64,000 bases of DNA from contig OZ218950.1 of assembly GCA_965112735.1 (NCBI GenBank), positions 7,254,001 to 7,318,000 of the forward strand, written 5' to 3'. Below are positions 36,889 through 48,600 of this stretch, in pieces. The DNA is from Phaeosaccion multiseriatum. Its lineage: Eukaryota; Protista; Ochrophyta, other classes. The position numbers and the translations under genes are program-made. Under the pieces are notes generated by a model, which did no database searches, was not told the DNA's origin, and saw only the letters and a list, made by a program, of their open reading frames with translations. Within the stretch, counting starts at the first letter, position 1. Every line of letters starts with the position of its first letter.

Positions 36889-39800
36889 TTAGGCCAAGCA
36901 GCGGGTGGCCACCTCCAGGGTGTCCTTGCTCACTCCTTCCGCCGCCTTGATGCGCTTGCACTGGGCCAGCATCTGCGGTGGGGAGGAGGAGGAGGAGGAG
37001 ATTGACACACAGACGGCGACGGAGATGCACAACCAACACGTCAACACGAGTCAGCGTGAGGGGCACGTGCAAGAGGTTCCTCTGTGAAGCTTCACTTGGG
37101 CACTTTCAACTCGTCTGTCCTCCCTGTCCTGTCCTGTTCTGTCCTGCCCATCCACTGCCATCCCCTGCCCATCCACTGCCGTCCCATGCCCATCCCCTGC
37201 CATCCCCTGTCCTGTACCTTGTCCTGATGCTCTTTGTCGAACCTCCTCCACTGCGCGAAGCTGTGTGTGTGCGTGCGTGTACGTGTGTGTGTGTGTGCAG
37301 GGAGGGACGGAGGGGGGAGCAGAGCGAGAGCAAGGAGCAGGAGGTGGTGATACAGCTGCTGCCCTGCAAGAGCACAGTCGCCAGTCCTCGCTTGCTGCTC
37401 ACTACAGTGCACACAAGCGAACAAACGCCCCTCGGGTCTCGAGTCGAAGCAGACATGTGCAGAACAGAAGAGACAGAGAGTGAGCCCTGCCTTCTCTGCC
37501 CTCCCTCCCTCCCTCCATCCCTCCCTCCCTCCCTCCCTCCCTCCCTCCCTCCCTCCATTCCTACCCCCCCAACTGACCTTCCCGCCAGCCTCGCCGCCAC
37601 CTGCGGGTTGAGCTTATCCACCGCCAGCGTCATATCCCCCACAAACTCATAGCCAGAACCGTCCTTGGCATGGAACTTGTCCATGCAGGAGGAGAAGACG
37701 GAGATGACAGAGCGAAGTCTGTTGGGGTTCTTAAGAGTGAAGTCGGGGTGCTCGAGGAGGGCCTTGACACGGGTCAGGAGGTCGGGCACGTCGGCGCTGG
37801 CTTGGATGCCGAACCACTGGGGACGGACGGAGGGAGGGAGGGAGGGGGATGAGAGGGAGGACAAGACGAAGGAGAGAGGACGAGGCACCAGAGAAAGAGA
37901 GGGAGAGAGCCTGCCCTTGAGCTTCGACGCACTGCAACGCAAACCCCTACCTTGTTGAGCACCAACGCCTCCCCCCCTGCGTCCTTGTAGAACATGTCCA
38001 GCGCGGAGTCCCTCTCCGGCCCGGGAAGGTCGGCAAGGCAGCTGAGGGCAGCGAGCTTGTCGGTCATGCAGTTGGCCGCCTTGAATTGGGCCAGGCAACG
38101 CTCCACCGCGGGTTGGTCCTTCAGCGCCGCCAGGTACGTGAGACAGGTGTTTCGCAGCCTCCTCCTGCCCACCTCGGCCCCGCTCTTGACGTAGGGCCCT
38201 TCGGGGGTGGCGCATTGGTCGTACACGGTCTCGAGTTCGGGTCTCAGGGCGGTGGCAAGGCTCTTCTTGACGTGTCCGAGGGCCTTCTTGAGAGCGTCGG
38301 GGTCGATGACCTGGGCTCCATTTGATCGGAGGGAAGTGAAGTCAAGTCAAGTGAAGTGACACACACACACATACACGCACACACGCACACAGGCATGACA
38401 TGAGCACGTCTCGTATCATTCATCTCTTGTCACTGGCTAGGTAGGTACTACGTCAATGGGTGGGTAGTAAGTCAATGGGTGGGTGGGTGGGAGGGGGGGG
38501 GGGGGGGCGCAGCAGTGGAGTGATTGCAACTATGGTCTACTGAAACGCAACTGCAACTGATCTTTCCTACACTGCAAACTGACCTATCTTCCCTAAACTG
38601 CAAACTGACCTTCATCTCCTCGGCCAGGGTGCTCATGGTGGGCAGGCCCAGCGCGTAGGACTGCAGCGAGCGGTCGATTTCGGCCCCGCTCTGCGTCAGC
38701 GTGGCTCGGAAGCTGTCCACCACAACCTGGGGGATGGGGGGCAGCTCCTCGCCCGCCTGGGGCATGTATGTATGTATGTATGTATGTATGTATGTATGTA
38801 TGTATGTATGTATGTATGTATGTATGTATGTATGTATGTATGTATGTATGCATGTATGTATGTATGTATGTGCGTGTGTGAGAGTGTGGATGCACGGCCA
38901 AGTGGAAGGAGAGTAACGCAGAAAGAAACGCACAACGGAGGGGAGGGAGGGGCAGGGGGAAGGTTAGGGGGGAGGGGTTCTCCGCCTTCCACCAACAGAG
39001 AGTCAGGCAGGCAGGTACACCCACTCTCACTCCCACTACGCACCGCGGCCTTGTCGGCGAGGGAGAGGATGAGCTTGGCAGACAACTGCTGCCCTGCCTC
39101 CCAGCGGTTGAAGGAGTCCGTGTCATGAGCCATGAGGAAGGCGAGGTCGGCGTCCGAGTGACTAAACCTGAGCTTGACGGGGGCGCTGAAGTCTCGCAGG
39201 AGGGAGGGCACCGGCTCCGAGGGGATGTCTTTGAAGGTCCACTCTTGCTCCTCCTCCTTGAGCTCGAGCACTGTGGAGGGCAGCACCTCCTTGCCGTCGC
39301 GGGTCAGGAGCCCGACCTTGACAGGGATGTGGAAGGGCAGCTTGGTGGGCTGCTTGGCGTCCGTGGGAGTGCTCTGCTTGAGGCGGAGGGTGTACGTCTT
39401 GGCCGAGGCGTCGTACTCGCCCGATGCCTCCACCTGCGGTGTGCCTGTGCAGGGCGACAGGGGGGGGGGCATGATGGCGGTGATGCAGCAGGAGGGAAGA
39501 GGTGAGGAGAGGGGGAGGAGGAGGCTTGGGATGGACCTCACTCACTCACTCACTCACTCACTCACTCACTCACTTACTCCCTGACTCACTCACTGTCTCA
39601 CCCACTCCCTGACTCACTCACCGTACTGCAGGTACCAGCGCTCGAACTGCTCGAGGTCCATTCCATTGGCGTCGGACATGGCAGCTCGGAAATCGTCACA
39701 CGTCACTGCACTCCCGTCGTGGCGCTTGAAGTAAAGCACAGACAAGTTGGTGGTACAGCACAGACAAGTTGGTGATACAGCACAGCACCCAGCAGTTGGT

Positions 39801-42800
39801 GATACACACGCATGCACATCCCCTCCCTCCCTTACCTTGAAGTAGAGGTCCATGCCCTTACGGAAACCCTCCTTGCCCAGCAGCGTGTGGTACATGCGAA
39901 TCACCTCGGCCCCCTTGACATAGACAGTGGCCGTGTAGAAGTTATCCATCGCCACGTAGCTCTCAGGCCGGATGGAGTGTGCCAGGGGGCCGTTGTCCTC
40001 GGGGAACTGACGGGCCCGGAGCACGCGTACGTTCTCGATGCGGTTGACGGCATGCGAGCTTTTGATGGAGGCGTGGGGTTGAAAGGGGGGGGTGTAAGGG
40101 GGGGTGAGAGATGTGTGGAGAGGATGTGGGCGTGTGAATACGTCAACAACATGCCATCTCGCAAGCGGGGCGTGTGTGTGTGTGTGCGAGAGGGGGCGAC
40201 AAGAGAGCCTGGGGCGTGTTTGCTGACTTATGGTACCCACCCCATGTCTGAGGAGAACTGCTGGTCCCTGAACACGGTGAGCCCCTCCTTGAGCGTGAGC
40301 TGGAACCAGTCGCGGCACGTCACGCGGTTGCCGGTCCAGCTGCGGGGGAGATAGCAGCAGATGGTAGCAGATGGTAACAGGTGGTAGCAGGTGGTAGCAG
40401 GAGGCGGTAGCAACAGGTGTTAGACCAGGGCGCACAACTCGGAACCGCCCCCTCCGCCTGCCGCAAGACACCTGCCGCAAGACGCCTGCCGCAAGACGCC
40501 TGCCGCAAGACTAAGTGAGTCAGACAAATCTGCAAATAACACCCGCCCTTCTCCTCCTGCCCTCCCCACTGACTCACTTGTGGAAGTACTCGTGTCCGAT
40601 GACGCCCTCCACCTGCTCGAAGTCGCCATCTGTTGCCGTCTCGGGTTTGGCGAGCACGTACGCCGTGTTGAACACGTTCAGGCCCTGCGGACACACACAC
40701 ACACACGCACGGACACACACACAACCGAAAGTGGAGTAAGAACCCCCCCCCCCTTGTCTTGTAGAAGCCCATCACTACCCCACCCAGCCACTGACTTACT
40801 ACCCCCCAATCCATTGACATACTACCCCCAACCCCCCCCCTGCCCTTGCCTTGTTCTCCATGGCGCCCATGTTGAAGTCGTTGACGGCGACAATGTTGAA
40901 CAAGTCAAGATCGTACTCCAAGCCGAAGGTATCCTCGTCCCACTTCATCGCCTTCTTGAGGCTCTGCATGGCCCAGTCCAGCTGCCCTACGTTCTCCTTC
41001 TCTGAGTATATCTCCAAGTGTACGTCCCTCCCACTCATGGTGTGGTAGGAGCTGGAGATGCTGCCAAGGTCTCCAGCCACGAGGGCGAAGAGGTAGGAAG
41101 GCTTGGGAAAAGGGTCCTGCCACACGGCGAAGTGCCGTCCGTCGCTCGCCTCACCCGACTCGATCTTGTTGCCGTTGCTGCCACACAGGGATGGGAGGGG
41201 GGGGGGGGGTTAGTAGCCACGCTGGAAGGGGGGAAGAGCACCAACCAAAACTGGGATTGGGAACAAAATAAGGCGTTTTGGTTGCTTCATTCCTGCCTTG
41301 GCTCGTCTCGGTTTTGTCTCCCCTACTTACCTGAGCAGCACGGGGAAAGTGTTCTTGTCGGCCTCGATCCGAACCTTCTTGAAGGTGGCCATGACGTCGG
41401 GCCGGTCCTGGAAGAACGTGATGCGGCGGAAACCCTCGGCCTCGCACTGGGAGCAGTACATGGGTCCGCTCTTGTACAGGCCGGACAGCTAAGGAGAGGA
41501 GGTGACAAACAAAGGAGGTCAAGAACCGAACCGGGGGCCGATAAATGCGGTTAGCACAGGGCAAGGAAGGATGAAGGATTCTGTTCAGCGTGTGCAGTGC
41601 AGTGCTTGCCTTGCGTTGCCTTACGTACCTGTGTGTTTGCTTCCGGGGAGATTTTGACCGTGCTCTTTAGGGTGAAGCCCGCTGCACAGGCGTTAGGGGG
41701 GCAGGCAGGGAGGGAGGGAGGGAGGGAGGGAGGGAGGCAGGGAGGGACGGAGGGAGGGAGGGACGGAGGGAGGGAGGGAGGGAGGCCAGAGGGGCCGAGA
41801 GGTAGAGACAGAGAGAAGAGGGGTGACAAGCGAGAGGCAACGGGCAAAGGGCAAAGAGAGAGAAAGGGATACTGAGAGAGAGGCATAGGGGCAGTGGGAA
41901 AGGAGGGAAGGGAAGTGCTAAGCAGAGAGGAGAAGGGATCCCCACAGGCCCTTGAGGGCATCGCTTGAGGGCATCGATGGCACCCGATGGCACCCCCCAA
42001 AGCCCCCGCCCATGCGACACATCAACCGCTCCACCGACCCATCGACCAATCCATCACCCCAGGGCCTGACTGACCTACCTGTCTTGGGGATGAGTTCGGG
42101 GGAGAGAGTGAGGCCCTCCTTCGTCACGGTGTACTGCGAGGCTGCTCGGTCCAAATGGCAGTGGATGGGAACAGAAGAAAGAGGAGGTATGTCAGTCGTT
42201 GCCCAAACCAAGGATTCTTGAAACGTTCTTGAAACGCGGGCGCAGAGGAGTGGGGGTGTGGCGGGAGGGGTAGCGCTTGGGTCGGCCTCTCTCACTTTAC
42301 ACAGCCAAAGCCAAAGCCAGAGCGCAGGCCCACTCTGTAGGCACCATCCCTTCCCTTGTACTGCTCACCGTCGAGCTCCTTCCCATCGAGCGAGAGGCTC
42401 AACACCTCCAGGTCCTCCCCGTCGAAGAAGGGCGCCGCAGAGCCATCTGCCAAGGCAGGAGGGAGGGGGGGGGGAGGACAGAGCAGGGGTTGAGTTTGTT
42501 GGTATCCACACGCACGCACGACGCACGCACGCACCCACACGGTGAGAAAGAGAGCAAAAAGAAAAGCAAGAGGGGCCAGGCAAGCGTCGCCAGGTTCACA
42601 AACGCCTACGTACGCTTACGTACTTACCAGGGTTGTGCTCCACGGTGAGCGTGGAGGTGACCTCTGTGGCGCCGTCCTTGAGCTGAAAGTCGAGCTCGAC
42701 TTCCTGTGAGGACATACATCGACATAAATGCAGAGCGGTGATGCAGAGCGGTGCAGTGAGCCGCGCTGTTTGCTGGTGTAGTGGAGGGAGCCCGTTCCTT

Positions 42801-43588
42801 ATCCTCTTTACTCTACTCCCTCCTTGCCAAGCACCTTCACCACCCTCTGGGTGGGTCGGTTCCTCCGATGATCGATCGTATGACATCGTTTTACCTTGAC
42901 GGTGTGCGTGGCCGCCGCGTAGTCCTTCCTGAACTTCTCCTTGGGTCCCTCTTCCTCCGCCTGGGCCTGAACCTCCGTCGTCCCTGCCGAGGACAGCGAG
43001 GCCGTAGCACTGAGGGTCACGCCCGTCACACCGCCCGTCCACGCCCCACCGCGGAGCCTGAGGGCGGAGGAGGGGAGGGCGGCAGGCGCAAAGCCCACGC
43101 GGGACCGCCTCACTGCAGGTCTGAGAGACGCAGAAAGGGAGGAGGGTGGGATCAGTGGAGGTCGGGGTAGGGCGAGGGATGCACAGAGTGCACAGACAAC
43201 AATCGACGGAGGAACAAAACAGTTCAGACGGGTGTAAGATGCGTCTTCCTTCTCACTTGCTGCAAAAGCGCCAGGCCTCGCTTCCTGCAAAAGCACCAGA
43301 CTGAACCTGAGAAGGTAAGCTGGCTCAAGCTGGGCACGGGGGGCTCTGTGGAGCCCACGTGACGGCAACAGGAATCTGTGACTTGCAAGAGGAATCTTGT
43401 CTCTTGCTCACTCTCTGCCTCCCTCTTCTTCTTCCTCCCGGTCTCCCCACCTCTCTCACCTGTAGAGAGCGGTTCTAATCCCTGCCGTCTGTGCTCTACC
43501 CACTGTTCCTCTGGCACTTGCTCGTGCGACGTTCATGACTCCCAGAGCCAAGCTGTTGACTCCTGTCAACATTCCGCGTCCAGCCATG
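36889..43588 (-). CDS. pepN: M1-family aminopeptidase N (PepN/alanyl aminopeptidase type) with an N-terminal organellar targeting extension, ~20 exons
   Basis: Motifs: [47 protein letters not shown]|[16 protein letters not shown]|[58 protein letters not shown]. The 5' exons and start codon are less certain. Confidence 0.95.
38765..38870. repeat. (TATG)n intronic microsatellite
   Basis: Seen directly. Confidence 0.95.
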
Positions 43589-43828
43589 GTCTTCCCTCCA
43601 GTGCCGTCAGTCTCTACGACGGGTTCAAGGCTTCCGCTCAAAAGTAGCGCTGCCAAGAAAGGGAGGGTTGCCTTTACCATATGACACAAGAAGAGATAGA
43701 GAGAGAGGTGTACAGAAACTGTGTGTGGACTAGCCGAGTCACATTCAAGGGGATGGTAACAGATGGCGTTTCCCCGCTTCGTTTCTCTTCTCTCTGTCGA
43801 TTCCTCTGTCTCTAGAAGAGAAAAGACG

Positions 43829-43996
43829 ATGGCGTACGCATGCTGTGCTCGGCCTTCTTTAGCCCCCCCCCTTCCTCCAGCAGCTGGCGCAGCAACAACT
43901 GCAGTAGAAGCAGGAGCTGGAGCAGAAGAGAGAAAAGAGGAGGAGGACGATGACCCTCGAGCGTCTGTAGGCCCGCTCCTTCCTTCAGCAGCTGGC

Positions 43997-44031
<35 letters not shown>

Positions 44032-45317
44032 AGCAGCAGCAGCAGCAGAAGAAGAAGATGATGATGACCTAAATGACCTCCTCCGAGAAATCGAGGAGCA
44101 GGAAGAAGAAGACACAGCAAGGGAGCTCAAAAGAGGAAGGTGTGCCTCACCTCCAAGTGCAAGGGAGCCCTCTGCAGCAGCAGGGAGGGGCGGCATTCAC
44201 CTCGACCTCCTGCCCGACAACTTGGTGGAGCGCATCCTCGAGCTGTGCAACAACCCGCGCTTCATTTCGAGCCGCTGGCACCACGCATCTGTCGACAACT
44301 TTCGCCAGCAGATCCGTCAACGCCTCAGCTGCGGTCTGGACCTGCCGAAAGCCCTCTCCTCCCGCATCGAGCAGGAGGTGTTTGCGGCCACGGGTCGGCT
44401 CGCCGGCAAGGCTTACAAGGCCAAGGCAAGAGAACTTATCTTCAATCTCAAGAAGGAGAGGAGCAATGAGCAGCTCAGGAGGCGGCTTATATCTGGGGAG
44501 CTGTCTCCCATGCTCTTGGTCTGTATGTCAGGTGTGTACGGCATGCACGCGCACAAGTATCGGCTACTGCTGCTGCTACGATTTGTATCTCCGTGATTCA
44601 TTGACTGATTGATTGGTTGGTTGGTTGATGCGCCCTCCCATTCTCGCTCCTCTTGCCGTGCTGGGCCTCCCTCTGTTGGCCTCACCCCTGCCCTCCCGTC
44701 CCCTCCCCCTTACGACGAATGGTAGTGGACGACCTGGCCTCGGAGGAGCGGCGAGCCGAGCGACAGAAGGAGCACGAGGCCTTCATCGCGGACAAGAGGC
44801 GGCCCAGAGACCTCTCACAGATGTCCTCCGTATCCAAGGTCAGCCACGCTGTATTGGGGGGGGGGGCAGGATTGGGTACCGGGCTGGGTACCCAACAAGC
44901 AGGCTGCGTGCGCTCTCTGCTGTGGCGGCGGCACAGAGGGGAATATGGGTAGGGCAGCGAGCGAGGAGAGAGCCTGATGCCGGCTCTGACTTACTGACTG
45001 CCTGCCCCTCTCAACGCTGCCACAGCTTCCGGGGTGTGTGCGTGTGTGCAGGCCATTCGCTCCCTCCCTGTCCTGACTCCTGACTCCGGCCATTCACCCC
45101 ATCATCCTGACTCGTGCCTCTATATGCCTCTATATGCCTCTATATGCCTCTATATGCCTCCTCTCTCTGCTGTGCTCTGTCCTGTGCGTAGGCGCACTCC
45201 TGCCCGCGATGCAGCCACAACGAGACCTTCGTCCGGACTTGGAGGCGGAAGCGCGTTGTGGACCGGGTCCGAATCGTACTCAAGTGTCTCAAGTGCAATC
45301 ACGTGTGGGACCATTAA
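43829..45317 (+). CDS. TFIIS-like protein: F-box-like motif + TFIIS central domain + C4 zinc ribbon; exons 43829 (or 43763)-44531, 44726-44838, 45192-45317
   Basis: Motifs: LDLLPDNLVERILELC; RIEQEVF..KAYKAKARELIFNLKK..NEQLRRRLISGELSPMLLVCMS|VDDLASEERR; CPRC..CLKCNHVW. Confidence 0.8.
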
Positions 45318-45658
45318 GTGCCATCCCGTGTGCGAGGAACTATATTCTACTCCTTCGTAGTAGTATTTTCCAGAACCGGTACACTCCTTGTTAAATGGGG
45401 CTGCAAGCGGGGAAAGGAGAAGGAGTAAAACGGTCGTTATTATATTCAGTTACATGACAAGCTCCATCAAAGCCCAGAGAGAGAGAGAGCGCTCAGAGAC
45501 AGCTCAGACTCGACCTCTACCTCTGCATGCCTCCGCCCGAGCACCGATCGCAACCGCCGATACCCCGGCTGCTGCTGCTGTCTGTCGTTCGCTGCCCAGC
45601 AGCCATGCCTCCCTCCATCCATACATCCATCCCACCAACTCCTTGTCACGGCAGGACG

Positions 45659-48600
45659 TCACGGCAGCACGGCCCTCATGCGCACCAAGAGGGTCTCCTC
45701 GTTCTTATCGTTCTCGTCATTGACAAACAGATACGCCTCCCTGTGCTGCCCTGGCTGCGCAGGCGCGTGCAACCACAGCCGAAAGTAGCCGGTGCCCTTC
45801 CCCTCAATGTCCACCGTTTCGTATCGGGGCTGCATGAGCTCGGGGTGGCTGGACAGCAGCTTGAAGCTCCTTCGAGCCCCCCAGGGGTTGGTGTAGGCGA
45901 TGCGCTTGTGCGTCTGCTGGCCGAGAGGGAGGTCGATGTCGTACGCCTTGGTCACAGTTGGCAGCGTCGTGGTTGCCGTCGCTAGCCAAGCCCCTACAAG
46001 CTCGCGACTGTCGAGGTCGACCATGTGCACCTGAATCTTCTGTGCGTACACGCCACCACCACCACCACCACCACCACCTGCAGCCGTTGGTGGTACAAGC
46101 GCAGCAGCCCCACCGCGGTCATGGCCGTCGCCAGCGTGACTCACAGCCGCCTCTGCGCCCCCCGCTTGCCTCGGTTTGAAGCGCATCTCCACCCTGTTGT
46201 ACGCGCCCGGCACGAGCTGAAACTCCGCATTGGGTTGGAAGGAGACATCCCTGGGGTGGGAGGAGAAGCACCGCACTCGGCGGGTGTAACGGTCACCGCG
46301 GACCACGAGGTCCACAGGGCTCGATTGGCCCACCGGGGAGTGCACGTCCAGACGCAGCCGGCTCTGAAAGGTATGAAGGCGAGGTGGGTAGGAATAGTTT
46401 CAGATTCAGTTGAAGGGGAGGGAGGAGGGCGTGAGAACAAAATAATCACTTTCACACAGGGAACACGCGCAGCTCCTCACCTGCACGACCACAAGCCAAG
46501 TCTCGTAGAGAGACGATTGGTGATGGTCATTGTAGAGCAGTACATAGAAGCTTTGCTGTGCAGGAAACGGCCCTACCCTGCTCTTGATTAGCACTTCCTG
46601 CTCGCCTCCCGGACCACCAACTGCTACCCCTCCGCCGCCAGCCTGTGGCCGCTGCCGCCACTCTACCACGACGTTCCCTTTGCCACTTCCCATGCCCCCA
46701 TCCTCCACACAGTGCACAAACTTGGGTCCCTGCCCCCCCCCAACTCCCCCTGCTGCCCCAAACATGTCCTCATACGTAGGGCCAGTGCGGGCGCGTGCGT
46801 GCTGTTCAGCCCTCGAGCCCGTCAGCCCCGCCCCCCTCCCCCTCCCCCTCCCCTCCAGCAGGCGGATGGCCCGCTTCAGCACCTCTCCCTCTGCCTGGAA
46901 GAAGCGCAGCGTTCGGTCTGTGACGAAGGGCCGGCGGTGTAGCTCCACTTGCACAAGGTTCACAACGTGTCCGTGGGAGGCGGAGCGGATGCTCACACAC
47001 ACACAACGCTCAGGGATGGAACCTTGACCAACTTGTTCACCAACTTGGTCCCCATCTATCTCATCCCGACCTTGGCCCGGAGCAGCTCGGCCTCCGCCTC
47101 GTTTTCGCGGCTCTACCGTGCAAGTGGCCACAGCACCGGCGTTGGTGTTGGCGTTGGTGTTGGTTCGCCTGGGCACGAGAGACAAAAAGCTGAAGGGTAG
47201 GTACACGCACTCGTTGGCCAGGAGGGTGATCTGCACACCTTCCCGTGGATCCACGTCCAGCATGTCTGCCTCCACAGGGCAGTCGCCAATTGAGCCCACG
47301 CAGGGCCGCACGTGGCGCCGGAGATGCATCCACTCCTCGCTCTGCACCACGAGCCGAAGCTCCGGGTCCTCCACGTCGATGCGGAAGCGCTCCTCGTGAT
47401 TAAAGGGGTTGCGGAACGGGTGCTCGAAGAAGAGGGGGGTGGCGAAGGAGAAGAAGAGGCGGTATTCCGTGGTGAGCGAGGCCGACAACACCCGCTTCAC
47501 CAACTCCTTCTTCTGCCCCTCGCGGTACCACTGGATCAGCGCCAAGGACTCCATACCCCCTGCACACGCCCCTCCTCCATGCCCGCGTGCGTCATCATCG
47601 CTATGTGCACCCCCCTGCGCGCCCCTCTGCTGCCTCATGCCGAAGAGTCCCCTGTTCTGATGCCGCATGCGCAACAGCCGTCTGTCCACAGGGCCCTTCG
47701 TCCTCGCCAACTGCGCCAGTTGCCTCTGCAACGTCGCCGGGTCCGACCCCCCGCCTCCTCCTCCCATCCCCTTTGCCCACTGTCCCTCCCCCTTACCCCC
47801 CTCGATAAGGCTGAGCCCAAGCTCCATCATGACTTGAGCAAAGTCGCTCCTCACCACCTCGCCCGAGTGGTTAGCGTCATAGCGATGGAAGAGTTTCTCT
47901 ACATCCACCCCTCCCCTCCTCGCTTGCCTCCCCACAACTCGCTGAAGTTTGCGCTCCATGTCCTTGGTGTCAGGATCTGTGCTGAACACGTACTTGCCCT
48001 CCTCAATCACATCGCTATCACTGCCACTGCCTCTGCCAGAGTCACCGCCCCAGCCTCCTCCTCCTCTCCTCCCCCTCTGCCGCTTGTTCCGCACGAAGCG
48101 TATAAACTCCACCACGCTAACGTCCCCACTCCGATCCCTGTCGAAGCGATCCACCAAGTCGATGATGTCGTCTTTTGTGATCTTGCCGTGTTCGAATACA
48201 CCCAAATCCTCCAACCCACGGAACATTTCCTTCACCGTGATGCGGCCGTCGCCATCTGTGTCGAAGTGCGCGAACACGCTCTCCATAGCCGCCCCCCTGG
48301 CCTCAGCTTGAAGCACCACCTCCCTCACCAGATTGTCCACCTCATCGTCCTCCTCCTCTTCCTCGTACTCCTCCTCCTCCTCCCTCCCCTCCTCCCTCCC
48401 CCACCTCTCTCTCCTCGTCCTCCCCCCCCCGCCCTCCTTGCCCTCCTCCTTCCCCTCCTCCTCCCCCTGCTCACACCACTGCAGAAGCTCGTGAAGCGAC
48501 ACTTGGCCGTCGCCATCTGTGTCCATGTGGTCCACCACTTGCGTCACCTCCTCCGCCCCCACCTGCACGCCGAGGCACCGCAGCGCCTGCTCGAATTCTG

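Follow-up and report, generated by a model that had tools for sequence, protein, structure and literature searches.

A conserved ochrophyte TFIIS paralogue with a basic hairpin in place of the catalytic dipeptide and an F-box-derived motif before its central domain

TFIIS, represented by yeast Dst1 and human TCEA1, activates transcript cleavage by RNA polymerase II (Pol II) through an Asp-Glu pair in the hairpin of its zinc ribbon. When this pair is removed by engineering (D290A/E291A, known as TFIISmut), the resulting protein still binds Pol II and prevents cleavage of the transcript in vivo (PMC2994637, PMC6863433). In the archaeon Sulfolobus, the TFS paralogue TFS4 has a Lys-Lys-Lys tip and inhibits RNA polymerase, and a TFIIS chimera with the TFS4 tip is an inhibitor of Pol II (PMC5715097). 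TFS4 binds the funnel of the enzyme and opens the clamp allosterically (PMC8448823). For eukaryotic Pol II, no natural paralogue that is cleavage-dead and basic-tipped was found described. Bacterial Gfh1 is a functional analogue of such basic-tipped, cleavage-dead inhibitors. Here, a TFIIS-like gene of the ochrophyte Phaeosaccion multiseriatum is described, in which basic residues surround the site of the missing catalytic dipeptide. It lies in a stretch of 64,000 nucleotides (the window; contig OZ218950.1 of assembly GCA_965112735.1, positions 7,254,001 to 7,318,000), on the plus strand at 43829–45317, and comprises three exons with 313 codons in open frames (Table 1).

Three further groups of proteins are needed for comparison. 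Elongin A is the Pol II-binding receptor of a cullin ligase (PMC5399097, PMC10716050), and the F-box protein FBXL14 targets the large subunit of Pol I under transcription stress (PMC9727647). Bye1, PHF3 and DIDO dock on Pol II using a non-catalytic TFIIS central domain (domain II). These groups are taken up again below.

The first-pass annotation of the window, made from its letters alone, had placed a TFIIS central domain and a following C4 ribbon at this locus, and both assignments hold. In exon 1, the TFIIS_M profile of Pfam (PF07500) is matched at E=2.1e-12 and 47.9 bits relative to a cut-off of 29.2, and a profile scan of the genome places this domain at window positions 44333–44530. An AlphaFold2 model of residues 118–234 (predicted local distance difference test score, pLDDT, 85) matches human TFIIS domain II (3ndq) with a Z of 11.3 and 2.0 Å over 79 residues, PHF3 domain II with a Z of 10.4, and Pol II-bound TFIIS chains with Z values of 8.8–9.3. 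Domain II also keeps its most conserved block, Y-K-x-K-A-R-x-L-x-F-N-L-K...L-R...G. The exons were searched and folded singly, never as one joined protein, with full-length orthologues serving as proxies. For one of these, P0001, a model of residues 66–266 (pLDDT 85) had as its top Foldseek matches TFIIS chains in Pol II complexes, spanning domains II and III, with E-values down to 9e-8. The linker that joins the two domains, counted from L-A-S to the first Cys, has 35 residues in the window gene and 34 in P0001; that of human TFIIS has about 32.

The zinc ribbon is encoded by exon 3. Here, residues 2–39 align without gaps to positions 1–38 of Zn_ribbon_TFIIS (PF01096), with a score of 20.5 bits, which is 0.5 below the cut-off of 21. 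The Cys spacing, C-x2-C-x24-C-x2-C, is the same as that of the canonical TFIIS ribbons of the same genome, and the ribbon of the P0001 model matches 1tfi. In the ribbon register, R-R-K-R-V-V-D-R falls on Q-T-R-S-A-D-E-P, so that the position of the catalytic Asp is Val, and that of the Glu is an Asp which is invariant in the family. The earlier claim that the acidic hairpin is replaced by basic residues was thus correct as to the loss of the Asp-Glu pair and the basic stretch in its place, but it overlooked this Asp. Neither the window gene nor any family member has a D-E dipeptide; instead, Val-Asp with basic neighbors is present. In the P0001 model, R-K-A-V-V-D-R forms the loop that joins two long strands. 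Because engineered TFIIS without the Asp-Glu pair blocks cleavage in vivo, a cleavage-stimulating role for the window protein is, by analogy, very unlikely. The first-pass annotation had also raised the prospect of an alternative last exon encoding S-A-D-E-P. The ribbon of exon 3 is the single C4 ribbon within 42000–47500, and the six frames of this interval, on both strands, contain no other C4 ribbon and no S-A-D-E or D-E-P hairpin.

The window gene is the third TFIIS copy in its genome (67 Mb, 22 contigs, all searched). As the first-pass annotation had suggested should be looked for, canonical TFIIS is present elsewhere: two complete genes with D-E hairpins lie on contigs 12 and 16. Both have domain I (TFIIS_N/Med26, PF08711) upstream, and no match to this domain was found at the window locus. 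In the same genome, Skp1 is encoded by a single gene, and F-box genes number at least seven.

In place of domain I, domain II of the window protein is preceded by an acidic tail and a helix-loop-helix, which the first-pass annotation had called F-box-like. The motif consists of a first helix (H1) with L-P-D-N-L-V-x-R-I-L, a short N-N-P-R loop that replaces the second F-box helix (H2), and S-S-R-W, which opens the third (H3). The structural match to domain II starts at about residue 154, and the F-box-like piece is therefore outside that domain. In the AlphaFold2 model, it appears as a helix at 130–139, an eight-residue loop, and a helix that starts from 148 at S-R-W, all at a moderate pLDDT of 68–79. 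The H1 sequence L-L-P-D-N-L-V-E-R-I-L is in register with Skp2, FBXO42, TIR1 and the F-boxes of the same genome. In H3, the window has I-S-S-R-W and the family consensus is V-S-K-R-W, which fits the V-x-K/R-x-W of F-boxes.

Taken alone, the window sequence gives a weak F-box signal: the Pfam scan returned F-box-like_2 (PF13013) at E=0.091 and 13.2 bits versus a cut-off of 21.6, and alignment to an F-box profile gave the same register with an hhalign P of 0.0064. Single members are similar, with PF12937 at E=0.017 for P0007 and E=0.032 for P0027. At the level of the family, the assignment is solid. A motif profile built from nine members was compared to all PDB sequences and yielded ten matches at E<=10; 9/10 are F-box proteins, with Skp2 (E=0.012), FBXO42 and TIR1 on top, and these align exactly on their F-boxes. 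When the motif profile was aligned to a profile of seven F-boxes from the same genome, hhalign returned 94.3%, with P=1.1e-7 and a score of 35.0. In 200 column shuffles, the maximum score was 13.4 (mean 7.8, standard deviation 1.7), and the reversed profile scored 8.6. P0007 is the one member with an F-box of canonical length; it aligns without gaps at 88.8%, with the same Pro-to-Trp spacing as Skp2, and when it is left out of the motif profile hhalign still returns 90%. At the profile level, the motif is thus a derivative of the F-box.

The gene belongs to a family that is conserved in the ochrophyte lineage. An exhaustive HMMER search using residues 118–234 identified 61 proteins at E<=0.001, and about ten of their clusters align from the F-box-like motif on. 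Orthologues with the same architecture, which the first-pass annotation had proposed to look for, occur at least in the brown algae Ascophyllum, Ectocarpus, Pylaiella and Discosporangium, in Phaeothamnion and Nannochloropsis, and in four additional lineages. That further lineages are involved is indicated by the contigs carrying these additional members, since they differ in guanine-cytosine content (0.42, 0.47 and 0.66). In complete members, the acidic N-terminus is followed by the F-box-like motif and TFIIS_M, and a linker of about 34–35 residues leads to the ribbon. The hairpin follows the pattern [RK]-R-[KRS]-x-x-[VC]-D-R-x-R, mostly with R-R-K at its start, and the four Cys and the hairpin residues R, D, R and R are invariant. 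When 17 ribbons were compared, all were either canonical (Q-T-R-S-A-D-E-P-M-T-T-F) or of the basic-hairpin type, with no intermediates (0/17). As the architecture and the hairpin are common to several ochrophyte classes, the family is a conserved TFIIS paralogue and not a product of decay.

Members are labeled in databases as 'unnamed', 'hypothetical' or 'transcription elongation factor S-II'. The family was not found described in the literature on F-box/TFIIS fusions, on hairpin-less paralogues or on TFIIS in Ectocarpus. Searching proteins by word index with residues 120–234 of exon 1 gave no match, and the window protein itself is absent from the collections. Feature- and shape-based searches of protein clusters returned only canonical TFIIS clusters.

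By fold and descent, the window protein belongs to the TFIIS family, yet it has neither the catalytic dipeptide nor domain I. It shares with Dst1 and TCEA1 the domain II fold, the F-N-L-K/L-R block, the linker length, the C-x2-C-x24-C-x2-C ribbon and the geometry of the beta-hairpin. It differs from them in the absence of domain I, in the R-R-K-x-V-V-D-R hairpin, and in the presence of the F-box-derived motif and acidic tail. It resembles TFS4 in being a paralogue that exists beside a catalytic copy and in having conserved basic residues where the acidic tip of the ribbon would be (PMC5715097, PMC8448823). However, the body of TFS4 is of the Rpb9-like, two-ribbon type without domain II, and its hairpin is shortened and has three Lys, whereas the window protein has domain II and a single ribbon, a full-length hairpin with a Val-Val-Asp tip, and an F-box remnant. 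Furthermore, inhibition has been demonstrated for TFS4 and is predicted for the window protein. The likeness between the two is that of analogues of independent origin and not one of common descent.

TFIISmut is similar in that it combines a TFIIS body with loss of the catalytic dipeptide, but it is a laboratory Ala-Ala mutant, while the window gene is natural, conserved and has a distinct basic motif. The Elongin A-Elongin B/C-Cul5 complex is alike in concept, as it combines a TFIIS-type module, Pol II binding and a Skp1-like adaptor, Elongin C. In contrast to the window protein, Elongin A has TFIIS domain I and a BC-box, is situated on the Rpb2 side and is metazoan; the window protein has domains II and III and an F-box remnant, with a putative role in a ligase. 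Skp2, FBXO42 and TIR1 share with it the L-P-x-E-I-L...I..F of H1 and the V-[SC]-K-R-W of H3 in register. Finally, Bye1, PHF3 and DIDO are related through their domain II, as the structure matches indicate, but these have PHD and SPOC domains and no ribbon.

The explanation that we favor, with a probability of about 0.42, is that the window protein occupies the secondary channel of Pol II without being able to promote cleavage, that it competes with TFIIS, and that its F-box remnant is coupled to Skp1 and a Skp1-cullin-F-box (SCF) ligase. The first-pass annotation had suggested a non-catalytic mimic of TFIIS that might recruit an SCF ligase to stalled Pol II or else act as a TFIIS antagonist; the structural premises of this idea are supported, and its functional claims are predictions. 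The parts that would be needed for docking are retained: domain II for the Rpb1 jaw and funnel, the zinc ribbon with which TFIIS enters the pore, and, between them, a linker whose length is normal. Lost are the Asp-Glu pair that activates cleavage, replaced by a basic hairpin, and domain I, replaced by the acidic tail and the F-box-derived helix pair. The protein would sit in the secondary channel of Pol II, probably of an arrested or backtracked enzyme, using TFIIS-like binding, and the pore would then hold a hairpin that is positively charged and non-catalytic. Cleavage would not be stimulated, the two catalytic TFIIS proteins would be outcompeted, and the backtracked polymerase would stay uncleaved. 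The F-box remnant would then link the trapped state to Skp1. Here, the favored outcome is that an SCF ligase is delivered to the trapped polymerase and ubiquitylates it; alternatively, the link could serve SCF-controlled turnover of the factor itself. Binding to Pol II, inhibition, binding to Skp1 and the target of ubiquitylation are each what we infer from the parts present. A more specific form of this proposal, which we consider unlikely, is that the protein is a new SCF substrate receptor, in which the cleavage-dead TFIIS body senses persistently backtracked Pol II from inside the pore and the basic hairpin holds the enzyme while it is ubiquitylated.

The reading frames of orthologues are continuous across both intron positions of the window gene and these uninterrupted frames support the splice model. 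The junction at intron 1 reads M-S-V-D-D-L-A-S, and its counterpart in P0007 is R-M-S-V-N-E-L-A. Four runs of one sample yielded DNA contigs that are identical to the window over 44073–45144 and 45131–46043; because they match it letter for letter, the ribbon is not an assembly error. These four runs are the only ones carrying the locus and all are DNA, so splicing is deduced from sequence and orthology. A second possible start for exon 1 is present as an in-frame ATG at 43763. The orthologue contigs L020–L024 have no poly-A tails and are either complementary DNA or intronless genes.

Several properties of the gene argue against the favored explanation, in whole or in part. The window protein and most members are without 5–6 residues of H2 in every F-box alignment, and because of this loss of about five residues Skp1 binding cannot be assumed. 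No member scores above a Pfam F-box cut-off, the best being PF12937 at 15.3 bits versus 24.3. Brown algae and P0028 have Ile or Leu where the hallmark Trp would be. In both AlphaFold2 models, the last F-box helix is continuous with helix 1 of domain II, with a pLDDT of 67–79 in this region. The Asp kept at the position of the catalytic Glu makes some metal-related role possible, and the hairpin is full length, not shortened as in TFS4. Lastly, no splice joints were found in the four runs that carry the locus, all of which are DNA contigs of one sample.

A doubtful but serious alternative is that the protein is a stand-alone inhibitor or competitor in the secondary channel, whose F-box remnant does not bind Skp1 and instead caps domain II or binds another partner. 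The deletion in H2, the sub-threshold F-box scores and the fusion of H3 to helix 1 of domain II all fit such a protein, as do the conserved basic hairpin in the D-E position and the precedent of TFS4 (PMC5715097). What it does not account for is that L-P-D-E-I-L and V-S-K-R-W are both retained in classes whose identity has otherwise fallen to 30–40%, which points to selection on a Skp1-type surface and not on a mere helix. A change of target is improbable. Here, the TFIIS body would act on Pol I or Pol III, or the ribbon would bind nucleic acid, with the SCF acting elsewhere. Strongly basic as a whole, the ribbon has an R-R-K stretch that may resemble the non-inserting C-ribbon of Rpb9. In addition, there is an F-box protein known to target Pol I (PMC9727647). 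Opposed to this are the retention of the most conserved domain II block, the preserved linker length, and the best structure matches, which are Pol II-bound TFIIS and the domains of PHF3 and Bye1. Far less probable still is that the gene is a decaying duplicate or an artefact of the gene model, with either a true last exon encoding a normal hairpin or a ribbon that is a pseudo-exon. In favor of this reading, all runs that carry the locus are DNA, and the ribbon scores 0.5 bit under its Pfam cut-off. Yet at least ten other clusters have open, contiguous frames with this hairpin and architecture, and nothing else within 42000–47500 could encode a ribbon or a SADEP-like hairpin. Moreover, the frames are intact, none of the four Cys is missing, and independent contigs confirm the DNA.

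The features of the gene and the other TFIIS-type genes of the genome are collected in Table 1. No Rpb9-like ribbon was identified in the genome scan with Zn_ribbon_TFIIS; it may have been missed because of an intron split or divergence. The contig 12 TFIIS (~743579–746961) has a 763-residue open frame upstream, and the region has long introns of simple repeats. In the contig 16 TFIIS (L003, ~764–1626), a tandem array of a unit of about ten residues, G-M-G-K-R-E-K-R-V-E, occurs between domain II and the ribbon and is probably intronic.

Table 1. Features of the window gene (window coordinates) and other TFIIS-type genes in the genome
Feature	Location	Strand	Description or basis
Exon 1	43829..44531	+	234 codons and first base of next codon; donor AG|GTGTGT at 44531/44532
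Acidic low-complexity N-terminus	43829..44194	+	Ala/Glu/Asp-rich; translation
F-box-derived helix-loop-helix	44201..44287	+	Family profile versus PDB, hhalign, AlphaFold2 helices
TFIIS central domain (domain II), exon 1 part	44288..44531	+	Pfam TFIIS_M; structure match
Intron 1	44532..44725	+	Phase 1; GT at 44532, AG at 44724-44725; pyrimidine-rich 3' end
Exon 2	44726..44838	+	End of TFIIS_M and most of domain II-III linker; orthologue alignment
Intron 2	44839..45191	+	Phase 0; GT at 44839, AG at 45190-45191; pyrimidine-rich 3' end
Exon 3	45192..45317	+	C4 zinc ribbon 45195-45308, as placed by genome profile scan; stop codon TAA 45315-45317
Hairpin W-R-R-K-R-V-V-D-R-V-R	45240..45272	+	Tip loop R-K-R-V-V-D-R; Pfam register, Cys spacing
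Complete TFIIS	contig 12		Domain I, domain II, ribbon with Q-T-R-S-A-D-E-P
Complete TFIIS	contig 16		Domain I, domain II, ribbon with Q-M-R-S-G-D-E-P
RPC11-like ribbon	contig 7		
RPA12-like ribbon	contig 3		
TFIIS_M gene without ribbon	contig 4		Bye1/PHF3/DIDO-type candidate

The window gene is flanked on both sides by minus-strand genes. Of these, the upstream neighbor (~37100–41000) consists of exon-like frames whose motifs resemble those of an M1-family aminopeptidase N. An antisense open frame at 43456–44196 on the minus strand, which encodes 246 residues of Ala and Ser runs, was rejected as a gene, being a by-product of GCA/GCT repeats in exon 1. Intron 2 contains, at ~45115–45160, four tandem copies of the 10-bp unit c-t-a-t-a-t-g-c-c-t, where word depth is about 3- to 9-fold that of the flanks and contigs break; further copies of the unit probably exist at other sites in the genome.

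The acidic N-terminus contains an acidic-hydrophobic motif, L-N-D-L-L-R-E-I-E, at 44069–44095. Motifs that fit the pattern D-[FL]-[FLV]-x-E-[IL]-[DE] recur in P0002 (~50), P0028 (~26), P0027 (~26 and ~61) and the N-terminus of P0013, in N-termini that are otherwise not alignable, and may represent a linear interaction motif.

With regard to gene structure in the family, the eustigmatophyte orthologues have two introns, one right after L-P-D in the F-box-like motif and one after W-E-R-I-K-I-L, and the window gene has none at either site. The Nannochloropsis-like products P0071, P0072 and P0073 are mis-called and read through introns. An origin from giant viruses, which carry TFIIS, was considered and rejected in view of the introns, the host-gene neighbors and the vertical sharing among algal classes. 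Viral TFIIS keeps D-E, which also counts against such an origin.

The family would offer eukaryotic transcription research a natural TFIIS antagonist, and both Nannochloropsis and Ectocarpus are tractable carriers of it. The database label 'transcription elongation factor S-II' would then hide a paralogue whose function is, as we infer it, the opposite. An active F-box remnant would, in addition, connect the SCF ubiquitin system physically and directly to the pore of Pol II. If the substrate-receptor form of the proposal is true, the ochrophytes would have a route of their own to the 'last-resort' removal of arrested Pol II.

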